From Macrostomum lignano (Eukaryota): a DNA stretch of 64,000 nucleotides. The position numbers and the translations under genes were made by a program. The stretch covers positions 1 to 64,000 of the forward strand of contig NIVC01000670.1 in the NCBI GenBank assembly GCA_002269645.1. Reading direction: 5' to 3'. This document shows, piece after piece, positions 12,140 to 35,384 of this stretch (position 1 is its first letter; every line of letters begins with the position of its first letter). The notes beneath the pieces are model-generated. The model made no database searches and had not been told where the DNA came from. It saw only the letters and a list, made by a program, of their open reading frames with translations.

Positions 12140-13405
12140 TGAGGGGATTAGAGATGGGGTGAGAGAGTATTAGAGATGGGGTGAAAGGGGATTAGAGATG
12201 GGTGGGAGGGGATTAGAGATGGGGTGAGAGGGAAATTAGAGATAGGGGTGAGAGAGTATTTGAGATGGGGTGAAAGGGGTTAAAGATGGGGTGAGAGAGT
12301 ATTAGAGATGGGGTGAAAGGGGATTAGAGATGGGGTGGGAGGGGATTAGAGATGGGGTGGGAGGGGATTAGAGATGGGGTGAGAGGGAAATTAGAGATAG
12401 GGGTGAGAGAGTATTAGAGATAGGGGTGAGAGGGGATTAGAGATGGGGTGAGAGAGTATTAGAGATGGGGTGAAAGGGGATTAGAGATGGGGTGGGAGGG
12501 GATTAGAGATGGGGTGAGAGGGAAATTAGAGATAGGGGTGAGAGAGTATTAGAGATAGGGGTGAGAGGGGATTAGAGATGGGGTGGGAGGGGATTAGAGA
12601 TGGGGTGAGAGGGAAATTAGAGATAGGGGTGAGAGAGTATTTGAGATGGGGTGAAAGGGGATTAAAGATGGGGTGAGAGAGTATTAGAGATGGGGTGAAA
12701 GGGGATTAGAGATGGGGTGGGAGGGGATTAGAGATGGGGTGAAAGGGGATTAGAGATGGGGTGGGAGGGGATTAGAGATGGGGTGAGAGGGAAATTAGAG
12801 ATAGGGGTGAGAGAGTATTAGAGATAGGGGTGAGAGGGGATTAGAGATGGGGTGGGAGGGGATTAGAGATGGGGTGAGAGGGAAATTAGAGATAGGGGTG
12901 AGAGAGTATTTGAGATGGGGTGAAAGGGGATTAAAGATGGGGTGAGAGAGTATTAGAGATGGGGTGAAAGGGGATTAGAGATGGGGTGGGAGGGGATTAG
13001 AGATTGGGTGAAAGGGGATTAGAGATGGGATGAGAGAGTATTAGAGATGGGGTGAAAGGGATTAGAGATGGGGTGAGAGAGTATTTGAGATGGGGTGAAA
13101 GGGGATTAGAGATGGGGTGGGAGGGGATTAGAGATGGGGTGAGAGGGAAATTAGAGATAGGGGTGAGAGGGTATTAGAGATGGGGTTAGAGGGGAATTCG
13201 AGATGGGGGTGAGAGGGGAAATAGAGATGGGGATGAGAGGGGAATTAAAGATAGAGGTGAGAGGGGATTAGAGATGGGGTGAGAGGGGAATTAGAGATGG
13301 GGTGAGAGGGGAATTAGAGATGGGGTGAGAGGGGAATTAGAGATGAGGGTGAGAGGGGAATTAGAGATGGGGTGAGAGGGGAATTAGAGATGAGGGTGAG
13401 AGGGA
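12140..13405. repeat. G-rich minisatellite, about 20-21-bp unit GAGGGGATTAGAGATGGGGT
   Basis: Variant tandem copies with higher-order structure. Confidence 0.95.
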
Positions 13406-14033
13406 TATTAATGATAAGGTGAAAAGGGTATCTAACATAAAGGTCAGATGGATACAAGGCATGCCTATACCAGCACAGACTATATGCAACAGTCCGTGGA
13501 TTTAACCAAAGATATACATGTAGTGACTAATCCTAAGTAGTCCCTCTATAGGAGATTTAGAGATATTTCAGCACCATATTATAATACATCAGAGAAGCCC
13601 CAGGTGCATAACGGGACTCGGGAGAGATTTTCTTACTCGTAGATTAGAGCCAGGTAAACAGCCAGACTCAAAAGAGATCAAAGTAGCTACAGAAACGAGG
13701 CAAAAGTCGCGCGTCCTCCAGAGTCCTGGACGAGTCTTTTATATCCATGTTGTTAACTCAATCGAGCATGCAATGGTGGGTTCAGCACGCCTGTGTTGCA
13801 TGAGACAGACCAGGCCTACGAGCTAAGGTCTGCGATCCTACACACGTGCAGCCCCTCTATTCTGGTGCAGGAATGGCAGGAGAACTCTCTCCAAGCTGAC
13901 TCGCAAGCCGACCCAGGGGTTCACGCCCCGCATGTGTTCAAGGCAGCTCTAGGGCTGCTGGACTGACTGGGCTCCGGCGGCGGCAACCGATCCGTGGCCT
14001 TTTGGCCAAGTTGGGTACGGGCTCCGCCCGGAA

Positions 14034-15931: not shown

Positions 15932-17199
15932 AACTCGCCTTGAGCCGGCAGGAAGCTGCGCGACCACTCTTGGAATCCCCGGAGTGGAAATCCTGCAGCT
16001 AAACCTACACCATTGCATCGCGGCCTCGACCAACCTGATGCGGGTGGCAAGCTTTGTGAAACCGGGCATTATCCTAATCCAGGAGCCCTGGACAAAGAAA
16101 GGCCGGAGGATCTCTGCCAGCTCGTCCGCTACCTAAGGGCTACCGGGCGAGCGACAATCCACCTCCTGGACTCTCCGGAGGGGGACCGCGCTGCGGACAC
16201 CGGCGCCACCGGAACTTCCTGCGCGACACCGCAGCACTAGCTGCCCGTGGTCGCCAGGGGTTAGCGAAATAGGGGGCAACGCCTCCTCGCTGTTTCCGGA
16301 CGCACGGAGCCCCCTGCAGCTAAGTCAAGTCAAGTAACTCAATCGAGTTTAATACCTGGAGCAGCAGCAGCTGCTAAGGCTGAACAGATGAGCACGTTTT
16401 GAACAATCGTTCCCAGTCCGCCGACTGACAGCCTGTGCAGATCGTGCCACGCAAGTGCATGCTGTACTTAGTAGGCCCAGGTTGATAGATTGATAGAGGG
16501 ATGAAGGGCTGTCAGTTCCCGATACGAGGGGCAAATATAGGAGCCTAGGAGCCTAGGAAGGCCCATTGGTGTGTGGGGGGTGGCAAGGGCAAAGTGCGGG
16601 GGCTTGGATCCCCAGGCTTTGTTAAAGGAGCATGGAATCGGGAACACGCACAGTTTGGTGGGGAAGGGTGTTGCAGAGCTACCCCAGCAAGCCCTATTGG
16701 CTTGGACCAATGGAGAGTTGGACTGGCGCCCTCAACCCTCGCCGCGCTCTCTCTATCTCCCTTCCTCTGACATGCCGAATATAAAGGCTAAGGCTCCATA
16801 GCATAGCCAACTAGCAATTCACAGGACCAGCCCAGACACAGCCCGAGTTGTGCGCAGACAAGATATTACAGCTTGTTGGTTACGCAACGAGAGGTAGGTT
16901 AGGGGCAGGCACAGCAAAAGCGCGAGAGGGGCTCTAGCACATTCCACTACGATTGTCCGAGCGTTCAGTTTTTCATTTCAACTTTTTCTCGCCTTCTTTT
17001 TAAGTTGCGCAACTTCATTCGGCCATCGCTAGTCTGGCACGAAGCAGTCTGGTCTGTCTGGTTTGTGTTGATTCCAATTGGCATCTATGAGCTCTGGTGA
17101 GTTTGACTGCTTTTTGTTAAACATTGTTCTTTTAGTGCGATTGTAGACAGGAGGGGCACCCTGTGTTGGTTGGAAGAGTGCCTACTAGAATACGAGAAA

Positions 17200-17590
17200 G
17201 ACGCCATTAGTATGAGATGCGCCATTCTAGTATTAGAGGCGCCATTATAGTATGAGAGGCACCATTCTAGTATGAGAGGCGCCATTTCTAGCATAAAATG
17301 CGCCATTCCAGTATTAGAAGCGCCAATCTAGTATGAGATACACCAGTCTTGTATCAGAGGCGCCATCCTAGTATGAGATGCGCTATTATAGTAGGAGAGG
17401 CGCCATTCCTAGCGTAAGATGCGCCATTCTAGTATTAGAGGCGCCAATCAAGTATGAGATGCGCCATTCTAGTATCAGAGGCGCCATTCCAGTATGCGAG
17501 GCGCCATTCTATTGTAATATGAGAGGCACCATTCTAGTATGAGAGGTGCCATTCTATTGTAATAGAATTGTAATAGAGGCTAGTATGAGA
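17200..17590. repeat. Degenerate 20-bp minisatellite GCGCCATTCTAGTATGAGA(G/T)
   Basis: Same family as 19678-20935. Confidence 0.85.
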
Positions 17591-17616
17591 TTCACTGGAA
17601 TAGGGACAAGTTTGCT

Positions 17617-18712
17617 GGAGTTGGAGTCATGGTAGTGGAATTGGAGTCAGGGTGATGGAGTTGGAGTCATGGTAGTGGAATTGGAGTCAGGGTGATGGAG
17701 TTGGAGTCAGTGTAGTAGAGTTGGAGTCAGGGTGCTTGAGTTGGAGTCAGGGTGATGGAATTGGAGTCAGGGTGATGGAGTTGGAGTCAGGGTGATGGAG
17801 TTGGAGTCAGGGTGATGGAGTTGGAGTCAGGGTGATGGAGTTGGAGTCAGGGTGATGGAGTTGGAGTCAGTGTAGTGGAGTTGGAGTCAGGGTGATGGAG
17901 TTGGAGTCAGGGTGCTTGAGTTGGAGTCAGGGTGATGGAGTTGGAGTCAGGGTGCTTGAGTTGGAGTCAGGGTGATGGAGTTGGAGTCAGGGTGATGGAG
18001 TTGGAGTCAGGGTGATGGAGTTGGAGTCAGGGTGATGGAGTTGGAGTCAGGGTGATGGAGTTGGAGTCAGGGTGATGGAATTGGAGTCAGGGTGATGGAA
18101 TTGGAGTCAGGGTGATGGAGTTGGAGTCAGGGTGATGGAGTTGGAGTCAGGGTGATGGAGTTGGAGTCAGGGTGATGGAATTGGAGTCAGGGTGATGGAG
18201 TTGGAGTCAGGGTGATGGAGTTGGAGTCAGGGTGATGGAATTGGAGTCAGGGTGATGGAGTTGGAGTCAGGGTACTGGAGTTGGAGTCAGGGTGATGGAG
18301 TTGGAGTCAGGGTGATGGAGTTGGAGTCAGGGTGATGGAGTTGGAGTCAGGGTGATGGAGTTGGAGGCAGGGTGATGGAATTGGAGTCAGGGTGATGGAG
18401 TTGGAGGCAGGGTGATGGAATTGGAGTCAGGATGATGGAATTGGAGTCAGGGTGATGGAATTGGAGTCAGGGTGATGGAATTGGAGTCAGGGTGATGGAG
18501 TTGGAGGCAGGGTGATGGAATTGGAGTCAGGGTGATGGAGTTGGAGGCAGGGTGATGGAATTGGAGTCAGGGTGATGGAGTTGGAGGCAGGGTGATGGAA
18601 TTAGAGTCAGGATGATGGAATTGGAGTCAGGGTGATGGAATTGGAGTCAGGGTGATGGAATTGGAGTCAGGGTGATGGAGTTGGAGGCAGGGTGATGGAA
18701 TTGGAGGCAGGG
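17617..18712. repeat. Minisatellite, 20-bp unit TTGGAGTCAGGGTGATGGAG
   Basis: About 55 copies. Confidence 0.95.
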
Positions 18713-19677
18713 TGGGACTTAAATTAGGGCTAAAATTTCTCAGTGGAACATAACCTCACAACCATATGCCATCATCAAACACGAATCTCTTTTACACCCA
18801 GAAAACCAGTCGCATTAAAGTGCATTGGGAACTCTAGTAGGGCTTTGCGAAAGTGCAACCCCACTGGGCAGAGCTGCCCTCCAGCCGTACATGCACTTGC
18901 CTGCTCGCCTGCATGCACCGTTGGAGGAGAGGCCAGCATCAAGGGGCGCGTGAAGGGGGGGGGGTAGCGCAGACGGGGGCAGGCGGACTAGAAGTTCGGC
19001 TTGATTGATTTCGAGTGTAAAAGTGCAAACTGCGGCTTTTCGTTGGGAAAAAAATCCCCGGGGCTGGCAGGGAAGGACGCTGAGGAGGAGGAGGAGGGGT
19101 TGAAGCCGAAAACCTGGAGTGCTGGGATAGGGAAGGAGATGGGAAAAAGTTCCCTATAACTCTCTCTCTCTCTCTCTCTCCAGGTTCGTACCCCCATGCC
19201 GCTCACTTTCTCAATGCGCCCGCCGGGTCTTGCTTCTTGTCTTCTTCTTTCAATCTGGAGAGGCCCGAGATGCAAACTAGAGACAGGGAGAGGGGAAGGG
19301 ACGCTGTGTGGTTTAGGCTCACTGGCGAGTGCGTCATCTCTTGGAGCAGACAAAGTGCACTAAGGAGAATATAAGGGGACATTATTTGGCTTTCTGTCAC
19401 GCTCCCAGGTCTGACGGATAGGCCCTGAGGGGGGGGGTTGCTGAACTTCTGTGTCTTGTTGACGCAGTTCAACTGACGCAAGCAGTTTCCTGCGCAGCCG
19501 TAGCAAATTACAGGTTTCTGGGAGACATGCTGTCAATATAATTGAACACTGTTCTCACTGATGCGTTTGTTAATTGAAACTGCAGCTGTTTCAGCAGACC
19601 TGATGTCATTTGAAATAAAAATATTACGTTTTAAGTCTCTAGAAATGACTTAAAAAGTGTAAACGGAGGTATTAAAA

Positions 19678-20935
19678 TTGCGCCATTCTAGCATGAGATG
19701 CGCCATTCTAGTATGAGAGGCGTCATTCTAGTATGAGATGCGGCATTCTAGTGTGAGAGGCGTCATTCTAGTATGAGATGCGCCATTCTAGTGTGAGAGG
19801 CTTCATTCTAGTGTGAGATGCGCCATTCTAGTGTGAGAGGCTTCATTGTAGTGTGAGATGCGCCATTCTAGTGTGAGAGGCTTCATTGTAGTGTGAGATG
19901 CGCCATTCTAGTGTGAGAGGCTTCATTCTAGTATGAGATGCGCCATTCTAGTGTGAGAGGCTTCATTCTAGTATGAGATGCGCCATTCTAGTGTGAGAGG
20001 CTTCATTCTAGTATGAGATGCGCCATTCTAGTGTGAGAGGCTTCATTCTAGTATGAGATGCGCCATTCTAGTGTGAGAGGCTTCATTCTAGTATGAGATG
20101 CGCCATTCTAGTGTGAGAGGCATCATTCTAGTATGAGAGGCGTCATTCTAGCATGAGATGCGCCATTCTAGTATGAGATGCGCCATTCTAGTGTGAGAGG
20201 CTTCATTCTAGTATGAGATGCGCCATTCTAGTGTGAGAGGCGTCATTCTAGTATGAGAGGCGTCATTCTAGCATGAGATGCGCCATTCTAGTATGAGAGG
20301 CGTCATTCTAGTATGAGAGGCGTCATTCTAGCATGAGATGCGCCATTCTAGTATGAGATGGGCCATTCTAGTGTGAGAGGCTTCATTCTAGTATGAGATG
20401 CGCCATTCTAGTGTGAGAGGCGTCATTCTAGTATGAGAGGCGTCATTCTAGCATGAGATGCGCCATTCTAGTATGAGAGGCGTCATTCTAGTATGAGAGG
20501 CGTCATTATAGCATGAGATGCGCCATTCTAGTATGAGATGCGCCATTCTAGTGTGAGAGGCATGGTTCTAGTATGAGATGCGCCATTCTAGTGTGAGATG
20601 CGCCATTCTAGCATGAGACGCGTCATTCTAGTATGAGAGGCGTCATTCTAGTATGAGATGCGCCATTCTAGCATGAGATGCGCCATTCCAGTATGAGATG
20701 CACCATTCTAGTATAAGAGGCGCCCTTCTGGGATGAGATGCGCCATTCTAGTATGAGAGGCGTCATTCTAGTATGAGATGCGCCATTCTAGCATGAGATG
20801 CGCCATTCTAGTGTGAGAGGCTTTATTCTAGTATGAGTTGCACCATTCCAGTATGAGATGCACCATTCTAGTATAAGAGGCGCCCTTCTGGGATGAGATG
20901 CGCCATTCTAGTATGAGAGGCGCCATTCTGTCACT
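19678..20935. repeat. Minisatellite, 20-bp unit (40-bp dimer) GCGCCATTCTAGT(A/G)TGAGA
   Basis: About 60 copies. Confidence 0.95.
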
Positions 20936-21469
20936 AGAGACGCACTGCAGCTTTTACTATAGACAACTAGGGAATCTTCCGTGGTCAATTGGTGCAAGCA
21001 AAGTTGCACCCCCAAATTTAAGGCAGATGAGCATACTTCTATTGGAAACCATTCATTATTGATCTGCTGTCTATGGCCTGAACCAAAATGACGAGCTTCA
21101 AAAATACAAGTAACGAGAACGTTGTCAGAATTTTTTAATGGATAAACTTATCAATTTGAAATATTTACTCAGAAATTTTGAAAAATACGATCAACGATTA
21201 ACTTTATAAGCCTATATGAATCAGTGATACGTCAGCCCAGACCTGAGCATTGCTTGAGCATTCACGTATCTCAATGCTCTCTACCGTTCATGGCTTGATC
21301 CTTGCCAGATTTGCAAAGTACATGGCATTCAATCAATGGTATGTAGACCTTAGTCAAAGGTTCACCATATCCGGGCAGTGTCGCTTTCTTGGCTCTGAGT
21401 CTTTGACAAAACTCAGTGGCCATATAATTGCAGCAGGTTTGAGGCTTGCTGGTCTCTCAGTGGGAGTGC

Positions 21470-21632
21470 TGTCTAGGGCGTGCTCTATGGCGTGCTGTCT
21501 ATGGCGTGCTGTCTATGGCGTGCTGTCTATGGCGTGCTGTCTATGGCGTGCTGTCTATGGCGTGCTGTCTATGGCGCGCTGTCTATGGCGTGCTGTCTAT
21601 GGCGTGCTGTCTATGGCGTGCTGTCTATGGCG
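21470..21632. repeat. Minisatellite, 14-bp unit GTGCTGTCTATGGC
   Basis: About 11 copies. Confidence 0.9.
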
Positions 21633-23335
21633 TAACCTGTCTATATTCTTATAGGAATAGGAAATTCAGATGACAGAAGCAAGTAATCGGTCCTTTATTT
21701 AGTTTCTAGAGGTTAAAAATGAGTACTGAAGATAATTTTATCTTCTGACGAGAAGAACTCTCTTCAGTAAAGAGTCAAACACATAGATGAGGGGTTGGAA
21801 AACTTTGGCCCGCGAAGCCTCTATTCGGCCCTCGGGTCTGTGAAGCCCGCTCAAGGTCTCTTCTCAGCTCTCTTATCGTATCTTCTCTCTTCCCTCTTCT
21901 CTCGATCCTCTCAATGCTCATTTCTCTCCTCTCTCCTCTAATCTTCTCCCTCATCTCTTCTCTCATACCAGATCTTATCGCATCTCTCCTCTCATCTCTC
22001 TCGCTCTCTCGAAATCCCTTGCACCGCTTATTAGTACAATTTTGTTTCGTTCAGCCTCAAAGGCGAGGTGAGAATAACAGACAATGAGATATAAAAATCT
22101 GAGAAAAGAGCGTTAGGGAGAGAAAATGCGATAAAGGCTGTCTAAATAGTCCACCACCCCCCATCCAGGCCAGCTCGCCTCGGCTCTCCCGGCCCCCTTC
22201 TCTAATCCAGGCACCTGCCCTGGATGCGCTTTAGAATCCGCCCCAAGCCGGGTCAATTCAGGTCAAGGCGAACAGCAGCGCGGCAGAGAGGAGAGACGGA
22301 GGGGTTGGCTGGGCCGACTGAACTGGAGAGAGAGCAGCCCTCCCACTCTACCCCACTTCTAGCTGTCCCAATCTATCCTCACGGTGCAAGAGGGGAAGGA
22401 GGCGGCTAGGTCCAGGGTTGCACTATTTTTCAGCGGACATTCCTAACCGCCGGCGCGGCTGCTCTGGACCAGAAATCTCTGGTTCACCTTGCGTCAACTT
22501 GCTGGTTATTTTGTCCTTAGTTCAAAAAAATTAGCCGAAACCAATCGAAAGTTCATTCAGGGGTAGTATCCTCATTTTTTAGACAACAACCAAGGTTAGG
22601 TCCATCAGAAATCACTAACAAAATTTCTAGATCCTTTAAAAATAATTTAAAAATCTTCCAAGTGTACCGTCGAAATCATCAAAAACCTTTCCAAGTCCTT
22701 CGAAATCATCAACAACTCTTCCAAGTCCTTCGAAATCATCAACAACTCTTCCAAGTCCTTCGAAATCATCAACAACTCTTCCAAGTCCTTCGAAATCATT
22801 AACAACTCTTCTAAGTCCTTCGAAATCATCAACAACTCTTCTAAGTCCTTCGAAATCATCAACAACTCTTCCAAGTCCTTCGAAATCATCAACAACTCTT
22901 CCAAGTCCTTCGAAATCATCAACAACTCTTCTAAGTCCTTCGAAATCATCAACAACTCTTCTAAGTCCTTCGAAATCATCAACGACTCTTCCAAGTCCTT
23001 CGAAATCATCAACGACTCTTCCAAGTCCTTCGAAATCATCAACAACTCTTCCAAGTCCTTTGAAATCATCAACAACTCTTCCAAGTCCTTTGAAATCATC
23101 AACAACTCTTCCAAATCCTTTGAAATCATCAACAACTCTTCCAAGTCCTTCGAAATCATCAACAACTCTTCTAAGTCTTTCAGAATCATCAACAACTCTT
23201 CTAAGTCTTTCAGAATCATCAACAACTCTTCCAAGTCTTTCAGAATCATCAACAACTCTTCCAAGTCTTTCAGAATCATCAACAACTCTTCCAAGTCCTT
23301 CAGAATCATCAACAAATCTTCTAAGTCTTTCAGAA

Positions 23336-23695
23336 GGGGGGCCGTAGCCCAGCGGTCTAGCGCAGGCTCTGGTATGCCAGCGACCCAGGCTCGATTCCAA
23401 GTGCAGTCACATTAATTTGGGGCTGAATTGGAATCTCGGCTTGGCTCTGCTCGTGCAATTAACGGCCTTGAGAGCCAACCCCCCAAGGCGCATTGAAGTG
23501 TACATGCCTGACGATAAAATAAAGTTAGGGCCGCTGTACACTCCTGTGTGAGTGTGTGCCTGCGTACGTATCCGCGCGCTTGTATGCCTGCTCAGAGGAG
23601 TCGGCGGAATGGGCAGTAATGCCTCTCGCCGGTTGTGTGTTGATGTCGCTTAAAGTGCGCCAGGGTGCACACAACCTCCCTGCCTCTAATAAGAA
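23336..23695 (+). mobile_element. tRNA-derived SINE family B, full length
   Basis: A-box (TAGCCCAGCGG) and B-box (GGCTCGATTCC) head; 13-bp TSD AAGTCTTTCAGAA; inserted in the 30-bp minisatellite. Confidence 0.85.
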
Positions 23696-24128
23696 AAGTC
23701 TTTCAGAATCATCAACAACTCTTCCAAGTCCTTTGAAATAATCAACAACTCTTCTAAGTCCTTCGAAATCATCAACGACTCTTCCAAGTCCTTCGAAATC
23801 ATCAACGACTCTTCCAAGTCCTTCGAAATCATCAACAACTCTTCCAAGTCCTTTGAAATCATCAACAACTCTTCCAAGTCCTTTGAAATCATCAACAACT
23901 CTTCCAAATCCTTTGAAATCATCAACAACTCTTCCAAGTCCTTCGAAATCATCAACAACTCTTCTAAGTCTTTCAGAATCATCAACAACTCTTCTAAGTC
24001 TTTCAGAATCATCAACAACTCTTCCAAGTCTTTCAGAATCATCAACAACTCTTCCAAGTCTTTCAGAATCATCAACAACTCTTCCAAGTCCTTCAGAATC
24101 ATCAACAAATCTTCTAAGTCTTTCAGAA

Positions 24129-24488
24129 GGGGGCCGTAGCCCAGCGGTCTAGCGCAGGCTCTGGTATGCCAGCGACCCAGGCTCGATTCCAAGTGCAGTC
24201 ACATTAATTTGGGGCTGAATTGGAATCTCGGCTTGGCTCTGCTCGTGCAATTAACGGCCTTGAGAGCCAACCCCCAAGGCGCATTGAAGTGTACATGCCT
24301 GACGATAAAATAAAGTTAGGGCCGCTGTACACTCCTGTGTGAGTGTGTGCCTGCGTACGTATCCGCGCGCTTGTATGCCTGCTCAGAGGAGTCGGCGGAA
24401 TGGGCAGTAATGCCTCTCGCCGGTTGTGTGTTGATGTCGCTTAAAGTGCGCCAGGGTGCACACAACCTCCCTGCCTCTAATAAGAAAA
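24129..24488 (+). mobile_element. tRNA-derived SINE family B, tandem duplicate (793-bp offset)
   Basis: Apparently identical to 23336-23695, with the same flanks. Confidence 0.85.
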
Positions 24489-25214
24489 GTCTTTCAGAAT
24501 CATCAACAACTCTTCCAAGTCCTTTGAAATAATCAACAACTCTTCCAAGTTCTTTGAAATCATCCACAACTCTTCCAGGTCTTTCAGAAATCATCAACAA
24601 CTCTTACAGGTCTTTCAGAAATCATCCACAACTCTTACAGGTCTTTCAGAAATCATCCACAACTCTTACAGGTCTTTCAGAAATCATCAACAACTCTTAC
24701 AGGTCTTTCAGAAATCATCAACAACTCTTCGAAGTCCTTTGAAATCATCAACAACTCTCCCAAGTCCTTTGAAATCAGCAACAACTCTTCCAAATCTTTC
24801 TAGGGAGTCATGAGCCAGTTCTGCTGCGGTTGCGGTTGAGCAGACGGCTACGCTGACTGGTACAAATTTATTAAATGTTAACACAATTTAAGGAAAAAAG
24901 TTACACCTATAAGGGGTGGAGCCGTAGCCTGGATGCGGCGAGAGTTGAACACCCTGTGATCTCCCGGACTGATTCTTCTTCTGACTTCTTCTGAGGAATT
25001 CTAGGCTGGCGCGCTGCAACATAGGTTTTGTTAATAAGTTCCTTCGCCTGACCTTCTAACTCCCTTTTTGTCTTAAACCTCTGTCCCACTCTGCATTCCA
25101 CTCGCTTTCTCACCTTCTTTCCCACTCTCTTATCTCGAGAACATAAACCTATGATAAATATTCTCAACTCTATCAACTCTATATTTTGGCCTCTGCAACT
25201 CTTTACTGGACAAC

Positions 25215-26943
25215 ATGAGCAAACCGTATCTATTTAATTCGTGCTCTGCATCAATTTTGACAGATTCAGCGGCCCGCCAGGCAGCAGCCGCTGCTCAAGC
25301 AGCTCCGGCTGAAGAAGGCGCCGTCGGAGGTGGCGGTGGGGCCGGCGCGGGCCAGCGCAGGACCGGCCGGGTGAAATGGTTCAACGTGGCCAAGGGCTTC
25401 GGCTTCCTGACTCCTGACGACGGCGGTGCAGATGTCTTCGTTCACCAGGTGTGAAAAGCTGCTGAGATGAACAGGCGGTCTCTAATTATAGGATTGGAGG
25501 GTGTTGGCGGTCTCTAATTATAGGATTGGAGGGTGTTGGCGGTCTCTAATTATAGGATTGGAGGGTGTTGGCGGTCTCTAATTATAGGATTGGAGGGTGT
25601 TGGCGGTCTCTAATTATAGGATTGGAGGGTGTTGGCGGTCTCTAATTATAGGATTGGAGGGTGTTGGCGGTCTCTAATTATAGGATTGGAGGGTGTTGGC
25701 GGTCTCTGCAGGATCGGAGGGTGTGGCGGTCTCTGCAGGATCGGAGGGTGTGGCGGTCTCTGCAGGATCGGAGGGTGTGGCGGTCTCTGCAGGATTGGAG
25801 GGTGTTGGCGGTCTCTGCAGGATTGGAGGGTGTTGGCGGTCTCTGCAGGATTGGAGGGTGTGGCGGTCTTTGCAGGATCGGAGGGTGCAGAAGTGAAAAT
25901 TTATCGATTGCTACATCGATTATATTACAAAGAGGGTGTAGAGTGCCTCTTTCCCCACCCCCGCCGCAGTCCGCCATCCAGATGCAGGGCTTCCGCAGCC
26001 TGGGCGACAACGAGTGCGTCGAATTCGAAGCGCAACCGGCGGCCCGCGGCGAGGAGGCGACGCTGGTGTGCGGGCCGGGCGGCGCAGACTGCATCGGCAG
26101 CCACCGCAGACCGGTCGGGAAGAAGAAGCGAAGAGTCAGGCGAGTGAAGGGACTAGTAGGGGCGAGTTGAGATAATCTCCATGGTGAGGAGAGAGAGATT
26201 AGCGAGAGTGGAGAGAGAGATTAGCGACAGTGGAGGGAGAGATTAGCGACAGTGGAGGGAGAGATTAGCGACAGTGGAGAGAAAGATTAGCGATAGTGGA
26301 GAGAGAGATTAGCGACAGTGGAGGGAGAGATTAGCGACAGTGGAGGGAGAGATTAGCGACAGTGGAGAGAAAGATTAGCGACAGTGGAGAGAGAGATTAG
26401 CGACAGTGGAGGGAGAGATTAGCGACAGTGGAGGGAGAGATTAGCGACAGTGGAGGGAGAGATTAGCGACAGTGGAGGGAGAGATTAGCGACAGTGGAGA
26501 GAGAGATTAGCGACAGTGGAGGGAGAGATTAGCGACAGTGGAGAGAAAGATTAGCGACAGTGGAGAGAAAGATTAGCGACAGTGGAGAGAGAGATTAGCG
26601 ACAGTGGAGGGAGAGATTAGCGACAGTGGAGGGAGAGATTAGCGACAGTGGAGGGAGAGATTAGCGACAGTGGAGAGAGAGATTAGCGAGAGTGGAGAGG
26701 CTGATTGAAACAAAGCCAGAACTGAGGACACTGAGATGACAAAGCAGGCAACAGAGATTCCCCACTTCTGCTCACTCCAGGTGCTACAACTGCGGCCAGT
26801 TCGCAGATCACGTGGCCGCCGAGTGTCCCGCCGGGCCTATGCCGAAGTCTTGCTATCATTGTCGCGGCGGCGATCACCTCGTAGCCGACTGTCCGAGACG
26901 GCAGGGCGGTGGCGGCGGCGGTGCATTCAGTGAGTCGCGGTGA
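25215..26943 (+). CDS. lin-28: Lin-28 RNA-binding protein (cold-shock domain plus two CCHC zinc knuckles)
   Basis: Exon ..25264-25448 ([28 protein letters not shown]), exon 25970-26139 ([27 protein letters not shown]), exon 26781-26943 ([29 protein letters not shown]). The true start exon and C-terminal end are uncertain; a possible donor GTGAGT lies at 26930. Confidence 0.95.
25477..25890. repeat. Minisatellite with 32-bp units shifting to 29/30-bp units (lin-28 intron)
   Basis: CTCTAATTATAGGATTGGAGGGTGTTGGCGGT, then CTCTGCAGGATCGGAGGGTGTGGCGGT. Confidence 0.9.
26190..26700. repeat. Minisatellite, 22-bp unit GAGAGATTAGCGACAGTGGAG(A/G) (lin-28 intron)
   Basis: About 23 copies. Confidence 0.95.
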
Positions 26944-27734
26944 CTTGGCAGATGACGGAACAGTCTGCCCAAATATGTTCGGGTCAATGATTGCCAGAAA
27001 AAATCTTAAAGGCGATGTTTGCAGGCAGGCAGTCCGGCTTAGCAACAAAATACGAGCGTAGTTGCCGAAGAGGCAGCCTGCCTAGGAGATTCGGTAAGCA
27101 GCTTGTCTGGGCGGTGTTTAATAGCTGTTTTCAACTTGACCCAAAATATAAATAAGACCAAAATTGCTAAGTAATTTTGCCTGCCTCAATTATAGCAGCC
27201 GAGCGCGGGCAGCCCAGCTGCGCATTTTTGTTATTTTTTGTAGCTTTTTTGTCAATTTTCAACCGTACTTAGATTGGCCGCTTCGGTCTCTTCCGCGTAC
27301 TGCAGTTTTCAAGTCAAGTCGAAGCAGCCAGAATATTTTTTTCTCTCTCTTGGCTCGCTTTGGTCCAAAAATACTCGTATTATCGCAGCTATCACCGCCC
27401 CCATCCCGTGCTGCTCCCGCTCGCCTCTATGGAAGCGCTGCATCATTTTTTCGCGGTGCGTCATTTTGCGCCTGTCCGTTTTCAAGGCTTCGACTGTTTT
27501 GCCTGCCTGTTTTTTATCTCTTTCTTTGAAAAGCTTGGCTATGCGTGCCAATGATTGAATGATTGAATTTCGGCCCTCCCAAGCTTTTAAGAGCAAAAGT
27601 ACTTATAGGAGCTATATCTCTGTATTTTGAATGTTGAACATGTCTTTGGAAAGAAAAGATTTAAGCTTAAACTATAGTAAAATAAATTGAACTAGAGACA
27701 CTTATCAATACCATTTAGGGCAGTCTAAAAAATC

Positions 27735-27985
27735 CAATCTCCATTGTCTCAGCAATCTTCAATCTACATTGTCTCAGAAATCTCCAATCTCCATTGTCTC
27801 AGTAATCTCCAATCTCCATTTGTCTCAGCAATCTCCAATCTCCATTGTCTCAGTAATCTCCAATCTCCAATATCTCAGTAATCTCCAATTTTCTAATATC
27901 TTAGTAATCTCCATTGTCTCAGCAATCTCCAATCTCCATTGTCTCAGCAATCTCCAATCTTCAATATCTCAGTAATCTTCAATCT
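27735..27985. repeat. Degenerate tandem repeat TCTCAG(C/T)AATCTCCAATCTCCATTG
   Basis: Imperfect copies of about 25 bp. Confidence 0.75.
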
Positions 27986-28583
27986 CGGATGCCTTGAGAC
28001 AGGATAGAAAATATCTACGAGCTGTCTGCAATTCCCTGTCAGGAATTTATTGGGCAAATCATAAAAATGGAGACGTTATTTATGCAAAAACAAAAATCTG
28101 ATGACTTTAAACACTGAATAAGATTAGCACAGCATATAATCCTATAATCTCGAGCCATGACAGTCTTATATTTTCCAAAGACCTTTGACGAACCAATTGC
28201 TAAAAAGACATTGAAGCAGCCTTAAATTCTATCAGGTCAACAGGAGCTGTTTCACTGTGTTTTTGTACAGGTAAATATTTTTGTTATTGTTGTGAAAAAT
28301 TGCATTCAACTGCGGCTCATGATGCCACTGCGGTTTGTGTTTTTTTCGTTGACTTGATGCACAGTATACCATTATAGTAGCTATTAGATTCCGTGTTTGC
28401 TGTACTATCCCCAACCAAATATTATGATAATAGTTCAAGCTTGGCGAATAAAGTACAAAAGGCTTAGTCCTTGTTTTTATTTTTTCGGTTGCTGTCTCCT
28501 TGAATGCGCAAGTGGTATTAATTGTTTTTTATTGATAGTCCGACTCCTTAAGCTCTTTATATCTACTCGTAAAAATAAGCTCG

Positions 28584-28751
28584 CTACTACCTCTATCCAT
28601 AACGTGAGATCGTGTATTCTTTCAATTTATTAGTTTTTGTTTGACTGCGTGAAACCAACCTCATTGGCTATACTACCTCTATCATCAGGGCTTTTTGTGG
28701 CTTAATAATTTTGTTTAACTGCACTTAATTACCTCAAAAAACGGCTACCTC
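28584..28751 (+). promoter_or_regulatory. Cluster of let-7 seed-match sites in the putative lin-28 3'UTR
   Basis: CTACTACCTC 28584-28593, TACTACCTC 28671-28679, TACCTCA 28730-28736, CTACCTC 28745-28751; all are complementary to the let-7 5' end UGAGGUAGUAG. Confidence 0.7.
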
Positions 28752-29299
28752 GTCAAGTTTGCTTTTTGGCAAAACTGACGTGACGCTTTTTTCAGGCCAA
28801 CGGGTTTCAACTAAAGTATATTTTTTTATCAGATGTTGCTGTATTCCTAATTTATAGATATCAAAAACTCAATTTTGTTGCTTTTACTTTTATTTTAACG
28901 TAGTTCGCTTAATTAGCAACTGTGAGCTTCTCTGTGCAAAATTTGGCAATATTTCTCGATAAAGAGTCGTGTTTCTTTGCAGTGTTAAAAAACCAAAAAC
29001 TAGACGGCTGCTCCACCTTTCCAGAGTATTTATTTACTCAAGATTTACTCAATCTATAATTTATTGAATGTAACTGTAATACCCACGCATTCATTCATAC
29101 TTAATCCTCATATTCTAACTCGCGTGTTGAGTCTTTGTCCACCGTTTTAAATACATATTAATTCAAAAGGTACCTGCAAGCCTATTTGGCTCTGCCACGG
29201 GTTACTTTACTCTAAGACAAATCAATTTCTGTGTGAGGCATCGATTTCTTATTGCTTTTAGGCTGGCATCTGCCTACGGCACTTACAAGACACTAGCGT

Positions 29300-30465
29300 C
29301 ACAGCAGCATGTACAGGCAATATACTGACATCACAGCAGCATGTACAGACACTATACTAACATCACAGCATGTACAGGCAATATACTGACATCACAGCAG
29401 CATGTACAGGCACTATACTGACATCACAGCAGCATGTGCAGGCACTATACTGACATCACAGCAGCATGTGCAGGCAATATACTGACATCACAGCATGTAC
29501 AGACACTATACTGACATCACAGCATGTACAGACATTATACTGACATCACAGCATGTACAGGCACTATACTAACATCACAGCATGTACAGACACTATACTA
29601 ACATCACAGCATGTACAGACACTATACTAACATCACAGCATGTACAGACACTATACTAACATCACAGCATGTACAGACACTATACTAACATCACAGCATG
29701 TACAGACACTATACTGACATCACAGCATGTACAGACACTATACTGACATCACAGCATGTACAGACATTATACTGACATCACAGCATGTACAGGCACTATA
29801 CTAACATCACAGCATGTACAGACACTATACTGACATCACAGCATGTACAGACACTATACTAACATCACAGCATGTACAGACACTATACTAACATCACAGC
29901 ATGTACAGACACTATACTGACATCACAGCATGTAGACATTATACTGACATCACAGCATGTACAGACACTATACTGACATCACAGCATGTACAGACACTAT
30001 ACTGACATCACAGCATGTACAGACACTATACTGACATCACAGCATGTACAGACACTATACTGACATCACAGCATGTACAGACACTATACTAACATCACAG
30101 CATGTACAGACACTATACTGACATCACAGCATGTACAGACACTATACTGACATCACAGCATGTACAGACACTATACTGACATCACAGCATGTACAGACAT
30201 TATACTGACATCACAGCATGTACAGACACTATACTGACATCACAGCATGTACAGACATTATACTGACATCACAGCATGTACAGACACTATACTGACATCA
30301 CAGCATGTACAGACATTATACTGACATCACAGCATGTACAGACACTATACTGACATCACAGCATGTACAGACACTATACTGACATCACAGCATGTACAGA
30401 CACTATACTGACATCACAGCATGTACAGACACTATACTGACATCACAGCATGTACAGACACTAGC
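29300..30465. repeat. Minisatellite, 29-bp unit ACATCACAGCATGTACAGACACTATACTG
   Basis: About 40 copies. Confidence 0.95.
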
Positions 30466-30849
30466 TGACACAAAGAAAAATAAAAAACAGCTAAAATTGT
30501 GCGAGTCTGAAGCAGCCCAGACTCAAAAGCAACTCAGCTAACACAGTGCAAATTAAGATGGGTATATTTTTATGATAAAAAATTTCCAACAAAGCCGTCC
30601 AAGGACAGCAACAGTAACTTGGTGAAGATGGACACAGACAGTGATTTTGCAGAATCTGTTTGTCAGCTGTCTCTCCAGCAGCTAGCTGTGCACGGATTCC
30701 AACCTCAAAAAAACATTAGCATATGCTTAGCGCAACCTTCAACTGAACCCAACAGTCGAACAGAAACAGTGGAAAACAGATTGCTCAAGAGCCGCTAGTA
30801 ACACTGAAATGAGGAGTATTTATTTGAATGCCGAATTTCGCTTCAACTT

Positions 30850-31010
30850 GCATTGGTCCCACAGCCAACGGTGAGGCAATTCTGTCCATTCCGCCGACTT
30901 CCGAGCGCACACAGGAGCGTGTACAGCGGCCCTGACTTTCTAATCGTCAGGCATGTACACTCTCTGTGCCTTGGGGGCTGGCCCTCATGGCTGTGAATCG
31001 CACGACCAAC
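30850..31010 (-). mobile_element. SINE family B-related fragment
   Basis: Contains GTGTACAGCGGCCCTGAC..GTCAGGCATGTACAC..CCTTGGGG and CCATTCCGCCGAC, shared with the other copies. Confidence 0.65.
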
Positions 31011-31146
31011 TGGCTAGCCTTCAGTAGTATGTTGCGGATCAGAACACACGCTTATTAGCTTGAAATAATCTCATAAATGCATATCGAAGCAAAAAATCAG
31101 CCTTCAAATAAGTGCAATTCAGATTCTTAAGCATTAAGCATTCAGC

Positions 31147-31581
31147 CTAAGCGGTCAGCAGTGCGCGCAAAGCAGCGTCCAGATCAGCGCCGTTTTCCCG
31201 CAGGCAGCGCTCGGCAGCCGACTGGCTGATCTCGAACTCCCTGGCTAGCAGGTCCGCGTGCTCCTTGGCGACCTTCACTTTGCTCAGCTCGCGCTCCCGC
31301 CGCTGCTTCTCCGCCTGGTCCAGCGCCTGCCTGGCCGACACGGCCCGCATCGCTTCGCCGATTTCGCCGCCAGCCGAGCGACCGCCAGCCAACTCGGCCT
31401 CTTCAACGTAGTCAGTCACTTTGCCGAGCTCGCGAGCGCCGCGGGCCTCCAGTTTCGACTGCTTGGCTGCTGCCACCGCTTCTCCGTCGGCCTCCAGCTG
31501 GGCCTCCGGCTCTGAGCATTCGTCGTCTGATTCGGCAGCCGCCGCAGCAGCAGCAGCGTCCTTGCCGCAGTTGTCCTTGGC
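31147..31581 (-). CDS. hypk: Huntingtin-interacting protein K (HYPK, NatA-associated chaperone); main exon, start exon not located
   Basis: ELGKVTDYVEEAEL..EAMRAV..RRERELSKVKV..EFEISQSAAERCLREN matches HYPK (LERVTDYAEEKE..EREKELAKVTI..EISRAAAERSLREH). An AG acceptor at 31583-31582 gives a phase-0 exon of 145 codons. Confidence 0.9.
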   Translation of the reverse strand, partial: AKDNCGKDAAAAAAAAESDDECSEPEAQLEADGEAVAAAKQSKLEARGARELGKVTDYVEEAELAGGRSAGGEIGEAMRAVSARQALDQAEKQRRERELSKVKVAKEHADLLAREFEISQSAAERCLRENGADLDAALRALLTA

Positions 31582-33047: not shown

Positions 33048-34247
33048 TTAGTCCCCGTGCGACTTGGCAGCCGAAGATGATGTTGCCGAGTTAGCTTGAG
33101 CGGCCAGCAGCCGTCCAGCCAGTCCGACGGTGACCGAGCCGCTAAAGAAGATGCAGGGCAGCCAGGCCCGGACTCGGACAAAATCTACACTAGGCCGGTA
33201 GGCATCCAGACAAATCATCATCTGATTGACAGCCGCGGCTAGCAGAGCGATGACAAGGGCCAGGCCTAGGCCGGATCTGGAGCCGTCAAAGTAGAACCAG
33301 AGGCCCAGACTCATAGCGGCCAGACACAGGCTGAGCTGAGCGTGCGACATGAAGTCGATCTTGGCGGCCGCCTGGTTCAGACCAACAAACAGGGCCGCGC
33401 AGCGGATGACGGAGCTCCAGTCGGTGCGCTGAGCCACTGTCGGATCGCCGAGCAGCCGGTCCACGGTGGGGTACAGCAGGCCGATTGCCACTGGGGCGGG
33501 TATTGAGGGAATGCGGCTGAGTTTACCTATAATGGAATACTGAGCTCGAGGATAAGGCAGGTTTCAGGGCATAACTTGGGGATCTGGGTGATGACAGCAT
33601 AACTTGGGGATCTGGGAGTGATGACAGCATAACCTGGGGATCTGGGAGTGATGACAACATAACCTGGGGATCTGGGAGTGATGACAACATAACCTGGGGA
33701 TCTGGGAGTGATGACAGCATAACCTGGAGATCTGGGAGTGATGACAGCCTAACCTGGGGATCTGGGAGTGTTGACAGCCTAACCTGGGGATCTGGGAGTG
33801 TTGAAAGCATAACCTGGCGATCTGGGAGTGATGACAGCATAACCTGGGGATCTGGGAGTGTTGACAGCCTAACCTAGGGATCTGGGAGTGTTGAAAGCAT
33901 AACCTGGCGATCTGGGAGGTTTGATAAAGCCAAATCTTTCTAAAGTTGGTGGCACAGCCTAAGAATGTTGGTAGACGGCTAGTTTAGAATCTTTAAGAAT
34001 CTTAAAGGAGGGGCGGGATCTGTTGCTCCAATTGTGATAGGTCACTATAAACAATGACGAGTGGATTCCTACCTGCAGAAAGGCCGCAGGCAGGTGGCAC
34101 CCACATGCCGGACTTGACCATACCAAGCCACATTTCCGATGTGATTAACACCTGATTTTTTTGCGCCTGCATCAGGTTGATAAGCAGGCTGACGCCAACG
34201 CCAAATAGGAATAGCATGGCAACCCGAAGTGCTACATGCACTGCCAT
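33048..34247 (-). CDS. insig: Insulin-induced gene protein (INSIG), 2 exons
   Basis: Exon 34247-34073 (LFLFGVGVSLLINLMQAQKN..WVPPACG) and exon 33490-33048 (GLLYPTVD..WSSVIRCAALFVGLNQAAAKIDF..FDGSRSGLG..RAWLPCIFFSGSVTVG..KSHGD). GT/AG phases fit. Confidence 0.95.
33575..33920. repeat. Minisatellite, 30-bp unit (INSIG intron)
   Basis: AACCTGGGGATCTGGGAGTGATGACAGCAT, about 11 copies. Confidence 0.95.
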
Positions 34248-35384
34248 ATCAATAATTTTTATGAAGCTAGCAAAAAAATCCAGCAAGAAATTAGTGCGCA
34301 ACTGAAATGAAATTTTAAATTCCTTCGTGGGTGAATTTGAAATCATGTTATATTATGCTTAAAACAATTTTTTCTGAACCACATTTGCATAGTTTCCCTC
34401 CAGTAAATTGAAAGATCTGCACTAGGACTTGTGCTTATATATTATGTACAAGCTGCTGAAACCCGCGGATTTTAAACACACTGAATTCCAATCGCAGGAA
34501 CTATGTTTGCCTGCATTCTGGAATCTGAAGCCGTATTTAAACAAAAACTTGTTCATAGCACAGATACTAGAATAACTAGATGTGTCACTCGCAAAAAATG
34601 CGTTTCTCTACTCTTTTTTCAGTAGCAAAATTAGCGTTTTTTGCCTTTATAAAAGTGAAATTAAAATTTATCTACTTTTGAACGAAATTTAAAGTTTTTA
34701 AAGCTGCAAAATTTGTCTGTGCCTGATTCTACAAGCAGGCTATTTAAATAAGCATGTCTGCTGAGTTTTACCGGTTCAAAAATAAACGAATTTAAGACTT
34801 AAGACTGTAGAAAACTACAAAAATGTAAAATTCCAAATTCAGTGCTTGGCATAGAGAGCAACAGAGAATAGTGCTGGCGCCCAGACATCTCTCTACTGCT
34901 CTCTCATTGGCTGAGCTAGATTGGGCCTTCTATCCCTTCCTCTCTCCCCCCCTCCCTCTCTTCACTCATCTCGCTCCTCTCATCTCTTCTCACTCCCCTC
35001 TTCTCTCTTCTATCTTTTCTCTCATTAAATCTCTAGCCTTTACTCTGTTCTCTTATCTTTCATCTTAAAACCATGAGCTGGAGTCTTTATCTGGTCTTTG
35101 AGGTCTACTTTACTGCTTAAGATAGGAGAGAAGATGGGATTGAGGAGAGAGAGAGGAGCAAAGGGGAGAGGAAAGGGGAGAGCTAAAGAGAGGGCCAGAT
35201 AGGCTTTGCTGGCTGCATGTGGCCAGCAAGACAGAGTTTGCTGATCCCTGTTTTAGAGAGTTACCAATACCGGAAGGCAAACTTCACTTTTTACAGTTTC
35301 GGTTCTGATTAAAGTACAGAGTTAAGACAATATTTAGTTAATACTAACTTATTCATATATGCCCAACCTCAAAATTTCACCCGT

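Follow-up and report, generated by a model that had tools for sequence, protein, structure and literature searches.

The let-7/lin-28 switch sets the step from stem or progenitor cells to differentiation in nematodes, insects, and vertebrates. In C. elegans, where this regulation belongs to the heterochronic pathway, the lin-28 3'UTR is short and contains single lin-4 and let-7 elements. The 3'UTRs of the vertebrate LIN28A and LIN28B carry multiple let-7 (and miR-125) sites, and the two components form a bistable double-negative loop; the second arm of the loop is provided by LIN28, which binds the loop of pre-let-7 (GGAG) and blocks let-7 maturation. Among regenerating worms, a related case is the acoel Hofstenia, for which let-7 sites have been reported in the lin-28 3'UTR along with those of C. 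elegans and humans (bioRxiv 10.1101/2024.12.01.626237).

Here, we analyze the lin-28 locus of Macrostomum lignano in a stretch of 64,000 nucleotides (hereafter, the window), the coordinates of which are those of contig NIVC01000670.1 (assembly GCA_002269645.1, Mlig_3_7; base-for-base identical over 7087-36943). In a preliminary description of the window, four let-7 target sites had been noticed downstream of lin-28, with a bearing on stem-cell control if the animal was a regenerating flatworm, which M. lignano is. Our literature search found no paper on lin-28 or its regulation in Macrostomum; the names lin-28, Mlig018021, and LIN28 did not occur in the accessible portions of M. lignano papers and supplements, nor did lin-28 appear in the published neoblast and germline signature tables, as far as their text was available.

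The lin-28 gene and its neighborhood

The lin-28 gene (annotated range 17087-26943, plus strand) consists of four exons: exon 1 (17087-17096; ATG AGC TCT G, followed by the donor GTGAGT), exon 2 (25264-25448), encoding the N-terminal tail and the first half of the cold-shock domain, exon 3 (25970-26139), encoding the second half of this domain and a basic linker, and exon 4 (26781-26943), encoding two CCHC zinc knuckles and ending with the stop codon TGA at 26941-26943. Joined, the four exons yield exactly the annotated 175-aa protein (PAA78716.1, P0001; BOX15_Mlig018021g1), which the protein assembled from the open frames matches at 98% identity. The exact annotated product requires that the intron after exon 3 be of the GC-AG type, with AG at the exon end and GCGAGT at 26140-26145.

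In the Pfam search, the protein contains a cold-shock domain (PF00313, E=7.1e-25, 87 bits vs. the cut-off of 27, residues 50-112), and two C-terminal CCHC knuckles of the retroviral type can be read directly from the exon 4 sequence. The zf-CCHC model scored 23.2 bits (cut-off 20.8), and the Lin-28A-like zf-CCHC_2 model scored 20.4 bits, below its cut-off of 27. Among the 374 matches to this protein, the named ones are lin-28 homologs (51-70% identity) that span insects, chelicerates, molluscs, annelids, and one brachiopod. Judged by its sequence, the gene upstream of the cluster is a genuine lin-28 ortholog; the combination of a cold-shock domain with CCHC knuckles, together with lin-28 orthologs as the closest relatives, bears out the gene assignment made earlier.

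The two next genes on the 3' side, those for a HYPK-like protein (30819-31572; CDS 31147-31572) and INSIG (33048-34301), are both on the minus strand, and no other coding gene separates lin-28 from the convergent HYPK-like gene, so that 26944-31146 is a convergent intergenic region that must accommodate both the lin-28 and the HYPK 3'UTRs. The HYPK-like gene, with its minus-strand AATAAA at 30819-30824, bounds the space available for the lin-28 3'UTR. The public annotation of lin-28 consists of the CDS only, without a UTR.

We also considered an extra intron, with a donor-like TCA/GTGAGT junction at 26929/26930, 12 nt before the stop, and an acceptor-like pyrimidine tract followed by CAG at 28270. 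Its use would swap the last four residues for a 35-aa tail that ends at 28377 and would place the cluster about 200 nt from the new stop. We rejected it in view of the annotated product, which ends at 26943, and of the alternative tail, which bears no resemblance to lin-28.

The lin-28 introns contain several minisatellites, with units of 20 bp (20004-20929), 22 bp (26188-26697), 32 and 27 bp (25474-25887), and 30 bp, the latter at 22670-23331, 23707-24120, and 24487-24800, within a segmental duplication. Upstream of exon 1, overlapping reading frames in the segment 14001-16400 are open over long, GC-rich stretches that reach 359 aa; a retroelement was suspected there and dropped, there being no Pfam match to the 14.0-16.4 kb open frames.

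Four let-7 sites on the sense strand

The cluster (28584-28751, 168 nt) lies on the sense strand of lin-28, starting 1641 nt and ending 1808 nt past the stop. Site 1 (28584-28593, CTACTACCTC) pairs with let-7 nt 2-11 and site 2 (28671-28679, TACTACCTC) with nt 2-10, both being extended 7mer-m8 sites; site 3 (28730-28736, TACCTCA) is a 7mer-A1 site that could form a G:U wobble with nt 8, and site 4 (28745-28751, CTACCTC), 15 nt from site 3, is a 7mer-m8 site. The canonical target-site rule, that is, complementarity to nt 2-7 plus either a match to nt 8 or an A opposite nt 1, holds for all four sites (three 7mer-m8 and one 7mer-A1). The spacing of 15 nt between sites 3 and 4 is one that allows cooperative microRNA action. 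At site 2, supplementary pairing is possible between the upstream AACC and let-7 nt 11-14.

With canonical let-7 in a fixed register, RNAduplex gave -18.7, -18.4, -16.1, and -15.1 kcal/mol for sites 1 to 4, respectively, with continuous pairing over nt 2-11 at site 1 and nt 2-10 at site 2. Unconstrained duplex energy is a poor discriminator of let-7 sites: by this measure, the best 30-nt window at site 2 (-21.0 kcal/mol) comes in at about rank 13 of 128,000 positions and site 1 at about rank 38. The GC content around the sites is 34-35%.

With respect to the preliminary description, the four motifs are all present on the plus strand at the positions given there, the distance of 1.6-1.8 kb from the lin-28 stop on the sense strand is accurate, and the AATAAA placed near 28447 is found at 28447-28452 on the plus strand. 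The count of four sites stands as four exact let-7 matches; it requires amendment in that sites 1 and 2 are copies of one unit.

The cluster is non-random and specific to let-7

Across the 64 kb of the window, 13 TACCTC hexamers occur on the plus strand, and 4 of these fall within the 168 nt of the cluster. The other strand was free of let-7 sites for 8 kb in both directions. For comparison, dinucleotide shuffles of the whole window gave expectations of 7.7 CTACCTC and 9.0 TACCTCA per 128 kb (both strands). For a local estimate of the chance expectation, the 2357 nt after the stop (26944-29300) served to train a first-order Markov model, which predicts 0.18 let-7 7mer sites for these 2357 nt and 0.013 for a stretch of 168 nt. 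For the 4 sites observed in 168 nt, the analytic bound is P < ~7e-8. When the cluster is counted as 3 independent events, the bound becomes P < ~1.5e-5.

Specificity was assessed in the same region (26944-29300), after masking of the 25-bp minisatellite, by counting the 7mer-m8 and 7mer-A1 sites of all 16,384 7-nt seeds. The let-7 family ranks first and is the sole family of the 16,384 with 4 sites in 170 nt. Four other families reach 3 sites in 170 nt; these are A/T-rich, and three of them are T-rich low-complexity words. The site cluster is thus strongly identified as non-random and let-7-specific.

In the let-7 complex, let-7 is accompanied by miR-125/lin-4 and miR-100. We take the bare 6-mer TCAGGG at 28685-28690, inside the cluster, to be a complement of the miR-125/lin-4 seed and ACGGGT at 28800-28805, just past the cluster, to be that of the miR-100 seed. 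Being single 6-mers, these matches do not exceed chance.

A degenerate tandem duplication inside the cluster

Sites 1 and 2 are embedded in an exact 13-mer, TACTACCTCTATC (13/13 identical), the copies of which are 86 nt apart. A second island of identity, TTTTGTTTRACTGC, is represented by TTTTGTTTGACTGC at 28635-28648 and TTTTGTTTAACTGC at 28709-28722 (13/14 identical, 74 nt apart), and the third one is (A/T)ACCTCA, where the decayed or near site AACCTCA (28659-28665, plus strand) aligns with site 3 (TTACCTCA) of the other unit. Global alignment of 28578-28666 with 28664-28738 produced a score that was matched by just 5 of 1000 shuffles. On the strength of this alignment, the cluster holds an old, degenerate tandem duplication (28578-28738, plus strand) of two units, about 86 and 75 nt long. 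No third unit was detectable, TRF reported no tandem array at the cluster, and sites 3 and 4 show no detectable repeat relation to each other. Because sites 1 and 2 are copies of one unit, the four sites amount to approximately three independent events.

The seed block of the two units is identical in 13 of 13 positions, and the remainder has decayed. An intact seed block within a decayed unit is the pattern expected from constraint on the seed; with two copies only, it is suggestive. The second island (TTTTGTTTGACTGC/TTTTGTTTAACTGC) may be another regulatory motif and is not known to match a conserved microRNA seed.

Polyadenylation signals and the extent of the 3'UTR

The segment between the stop and the cluster (26944-28583, plus strand) is the putative proximal part of the lin-28 3'UTR, with no coding gene and with an excess of T over A from about 27150. 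Across 26944-29300, the stop-to-stop open frames on both strands had no homolog among 5.8 billion proteins, that is, no coding gene was found in this region. The T>A skew of the plus strand holds from ~27150 to ~29150 and then inverts. As compositional evidence, this pattern is weak: it fits a lin-28 UTR running through the cluster and is what two convergent U-rich 3'UTRs would be expected to show.

Within 26944-31200, canonical poly(A) signals on the plus strand are found at 27681, 28447, and 30479 only. The AATAAA at 27681-27686 is a candidate proximal signal with a weak downstream context. The one at 28447-28452, 132 nt upstream of site 1, is followed 20-50 nt later (28470-28500) by a T/GT-rich stretch and, of the candidate poly(A) sites in the region, looks the best. 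The third, at 30479-30484, is the first canonical signal past the cluster, with neither AATAAA nor ATTAAA on the plus strand between 28751 and 30479, and is a candidate distal signal that would give a 3'UTR of ~3.55 kb. Variant hexamers past the cluster include ACTAAA at 28810, GATAAA at 28958, and AATACA at 29150. Given the good AATAAA at 28447 and the absence of a canonical signal after the cluster up to 30479, the main lin-28 isoform may end before the sites. A lin-28 UTR ending near 30500 would not collide with HYPK, given that the latter has its own minus-strand AATAAA at 30819.

Two minisatellites lie in this region. The 25-bp one (27733-27986, unit TCCAATCTCCATTGTCTCAGCAATC, about 10 copies, detected by TRF) is inside the putative lin-28 3'UTR and contains ~15 AATCTC hexamers that, we presume, may complement the miR-1175 seed; these are 6-mers only and are not significant. 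For its part, miR-1175-3p is very abundant in dividing cells (PMC4604429 Table S2). The 29-bp minisatellite (29305-30470, unit CAGCATGTACAGACACTATACTGACATCA, about 40 copies) spans 1.2 kb between the convergent genes, and the A/T skew flips here; the AATAAA at 30479 sits just past it. Each 29-bp unit contains ATCACAGC, which we take to resemble the seed of the miR-2 family, with ~40 CTGTGAT complements on the minus strand. The resemblance is probably a coincidence and would be relevant only if the HYPK 3'UTR reached this array.

The available transcript collections contain no M. lignano transcript contigs for this locus, and with that scope, the P0001 protein cluster has 0 members from RNA assemblies, and an exact look-up of the 78-aa open frame over 28397-28633 gave no match. 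The HYPK protein is recorded solely on the genome contig.

The second genomic copy and other lin-28 transcripts

A second copy of the locus (NIVC01000669.1, L002, Mlig022672g1) has the same neighbors and retains all four let-7 sites. Comparison of the two copies over 9000-34500 reveals blocks of 1-1.7 kb with zero differences alternating with blocks of 3-8% divergence; the zero-difference blocks include 12340-13663, 22445-23478, 24129-26926, and 27510-28788. The cluster falls in the last of these, a 1279-nt block that is 100% identical between the copies; the segment just past the lin-28 stop, 26927-27510, contains 44 differing columns. Since the identical blocks also cover introns and minisatellites, the retention of the sites in the second copy says nothing about selection. 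This mosaic divergence suggests either gene conversion between homeologous copies or cross-polishing during assembly.

M. lignano additionally encodes a divergent lin-28 paralog (P0003/P0123; A0A1I8INT1 / A0A1I8HVX2; 67% identity), for which there is no DNA on record and no NCBI counterpart was found. Beyond these loci, we examined four other lin-28 transcripts. One contains let-7 sites (L003; Logan DRR659550), and the remaining three, with 0.56, 3.5, and 1.6 kb of 3' sequence, contain no let-7 seed site (L005/L006, ENA ERZ23210045, ERZ23144287; L008/L009, SRR1189807, SRR1189711; L004, ERR10172489). With sites missing from three of the four, let-7 regulation sites on lin-28 are not universal among invertebrates.

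let-7 in M. lignano

The small RNAs of M. lignano have been sequenced, and reads identical to miRBase entries have been listed (Zhou et al. 2015, PMC4604429); we found no curated M. lignano microRNA set in the literature. The reads of let-7/let-7a amount to 22-26 rpm in whole worms and 55-70 rpm at regeneration day 3 (PMC4604429 Supplementary Table 2). The day 3 library contains zero reads of the vertebrate-only let-7c/d/e/f/g/i (PMC4604429 Table S2). Because this library keeps let-7/let-7a without the vertebrate-only forms, a genuine canonical let-7 in M. lignano is well supported by the published reads. The canonical let-7 sequence fits the complementarity of sites 1 and 2 at nt 9-11.

The irradiated-worm library calls for a different reading. 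In this library, let-7 reaches 1200-3000 rpm, a 50-fold rise (PMC4604429); the libraries from irradiated worms and dividing cells also hold the vertebrate-specific let-7c/f/g/i, miR-103/107, miR-122, and miR-106b (PMC4604429 Supplementary Table 2). Given the vertebrate-only microRNAs in the irradiated library, we regard the let-7 rise as probable contamination and do not take it as biology. The reported response of let-7, miR-100, and miR-125 to irradiation may reflect contamination across samples.

Discussion

The cluster at 28584-28751 probably acts as a let-7 response element within an M. lignano lin-28 mRNA isoform that has an extended 3'UTR; we hold this view with fair confidence. Through its seed, Argonaute-loaded let-7 would engage the extended 7mer-m8 sites 1 and 2, the 7mer-A1 site 3, and the 7mer-m8 site 4; sites 3 and 4, being 15 nt apart, could act cooperatively. 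The predicted outcome is translational repression and destabilization of the lin-28 mRNA as cells exit a state with high lin-28 and low let-7, with LIN-28, in turn, presumably blocking the maturation of let-7. For the lin-28 mRNA to include the sites, the AATAAA at 27681 and that at 28447 would both have to be read through, and the transcript would end at the AATAAA at 30479 or, before it, at some non-canonical signal around 28800-29150. The cluster itself appears to have grown in part by local tandem duplication of a site-bearing unit.

It had been proposed that alternative polyadenylation could produce a let-7-insensitive lin-28 isoform, and the sequence is compatible with this idea. An extended version of it, which we offer tentatively and consider rather doubtful as a whole, is that lin-28 is gated by the choice of the 3' end: use of 28447 would give a let-7-blind mRNA in neoblasts or the germline, and a distal end (28800-29150 or 30479) would add the four-site cassette in differentiating cells, the cassette having been born by tandem duplication in a minisatellite-prone genome. 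If true, polyadenylation gating would represent a case, tractable by transgenesis, of a microRNA switch controlled at the 3' end in adult pluripotent stem cells.

The main rival to a let-7 response element, unlikely in our estimate, is that the motifs are functionless, transcripts ending at the real poly(A) site at ~28470 and the cluster being untranscribed intergenic DNA, a by-product of local tandem duplication. The strong-looking AATAAA with its U-rich element at 28447, followed by the next canonical signal only at 30479, would be accommodated by this account, as would the origin of sites 1 and 2 from one unit, the abundance of tandem repeats throughout the window, and the fact that no transcript support was found in collections devoid of M. 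lignano transcript contigs for the locus. However, the excess of sites persists at P < ~1.5e-5 even for three independent events, it is let-7-specific among 16,384 seeds, and it occurs on the sense strand beside the one gene that is expected to have let-7 sites. Moreover, TRF detected no tandem array, and sites 3 and 4 share no detectable repeat.

A less probable alternative is that the cluster is carried not by the mature lin-28 mRNA but by a non-coding RNA of its own, be it a let-7 decoy or a downstream-of-gene readthrough RNA. The poly(A) signals between the stop codon and the cluster and the lack of coding potential in the region are what one would expect of such a transcript, but neither a promoter nor independent transcript support was obtained for it, and an extended 3'UTR is the simpler solution, in line with the multi-kb UTRs of other lin-28 genes (L003).

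Still lower, we place the possibility that the 13-mer TACTACCTCTATC and its neighbors bind another factor, an RNA-binding protein or a DNA-binding one, instead of let-7. The identity between the units continues for 4 nt (TATC) past the stretch required for let-7 pairing, and the second island, TTTTGTTTRACTGC, is kept as well; nevertheless, the let-7 seed complement is all that sites 3 and 4 have in common with sites 1 and 2, and we know of no other factor that binds this 13-mer.

Finally, the notion that the minus strand of the cluster encodes let-7-family microRNA genes, prompted by GAGGTAGTAG, which on that strand reads as let-7 nt 2-11, and by the likeness of AGAGGTAGTAGC and AGAGGTAGTATAGCC to the 5' half of let-7, was rejected as having next to no chance of being correct: there is no hairpin, folding being no better than that of shuffled sequences (z = 0.11; 112 of 200 shuffles fold equally well) and the let-7-like motifs lying outside hairpin arms, and neither let-7 nor any other Rfam miRNA family gave a match, either in the window at the gathering score or in 28300-29000 with E as high as 10. 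In addition, the let-7-like motifs have A in place of U at position 1, and their 3' halves differ from the let-7 sequence.

The reading that we favor is a let-7 response element in the lin-28 mRNA. Provided that this mRNA includes the sites, the let-7 brake on lin-28 is shared by the most tractable transgenic flatworm model, the circuit would be directly testable in neoblasts during regeneration, and M. lignano would contribute a basal platyhelminth data point on the antiquity of let-7 control of lin-28. To a specialist, this result would be expected rather than surprising; it should be useful for the Macrostomum community.

With C. elegans, the M. lignano locus shares an orthologous lin-28 gene, microRNA seed complements on the sense strand past the stop, and let-7 as the expected regulator; unlike C. 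elegans, it has four let-7 sites located 1.6-1.8 kb past the stop in a putative 3'UTR, and the lin-4/miR-125 seed match consists of one 6-mer, at 28685. The resemblance to the vertebrate LIN28A and LIN28B extends to the multi-kb downstream region, the presence of several let-7 sites, and the architecture of the protein, with a cold-shock domain and two CCHC knuckles, although the let-7 sites are not orthologous by sequence to those of M. lignano. In the acoel Hofstenia miamia, likewise a regenerating worm, sites for the LET-7 family in the lin-28 homolog have been computationally predicted (bioRxiv 10.1101/2024.12.01.626237). The Hofstenia prediction employed 3'UTRs defined by long reads and a curated microRNA set, whereas the M. 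lignano UTR is putative; the Hofstenia lin-28 UTR contains five sites in total for four seed families, compared to four let-7 sites within 168 nt in M. lignano. A counterpart in site number is transcript L003, the protein product of which (P0010) has the annelid Paralvinella as its nearest named relative (77%): in a 3'UTR that spans at least 2.9 kb, this transcript contains four let-7 7mer sites, all in sense orientation. In this transcript, however, all the sites are TACCTCA and are scattered over 1.4 kb, whereas those of M. lignano are clustered.
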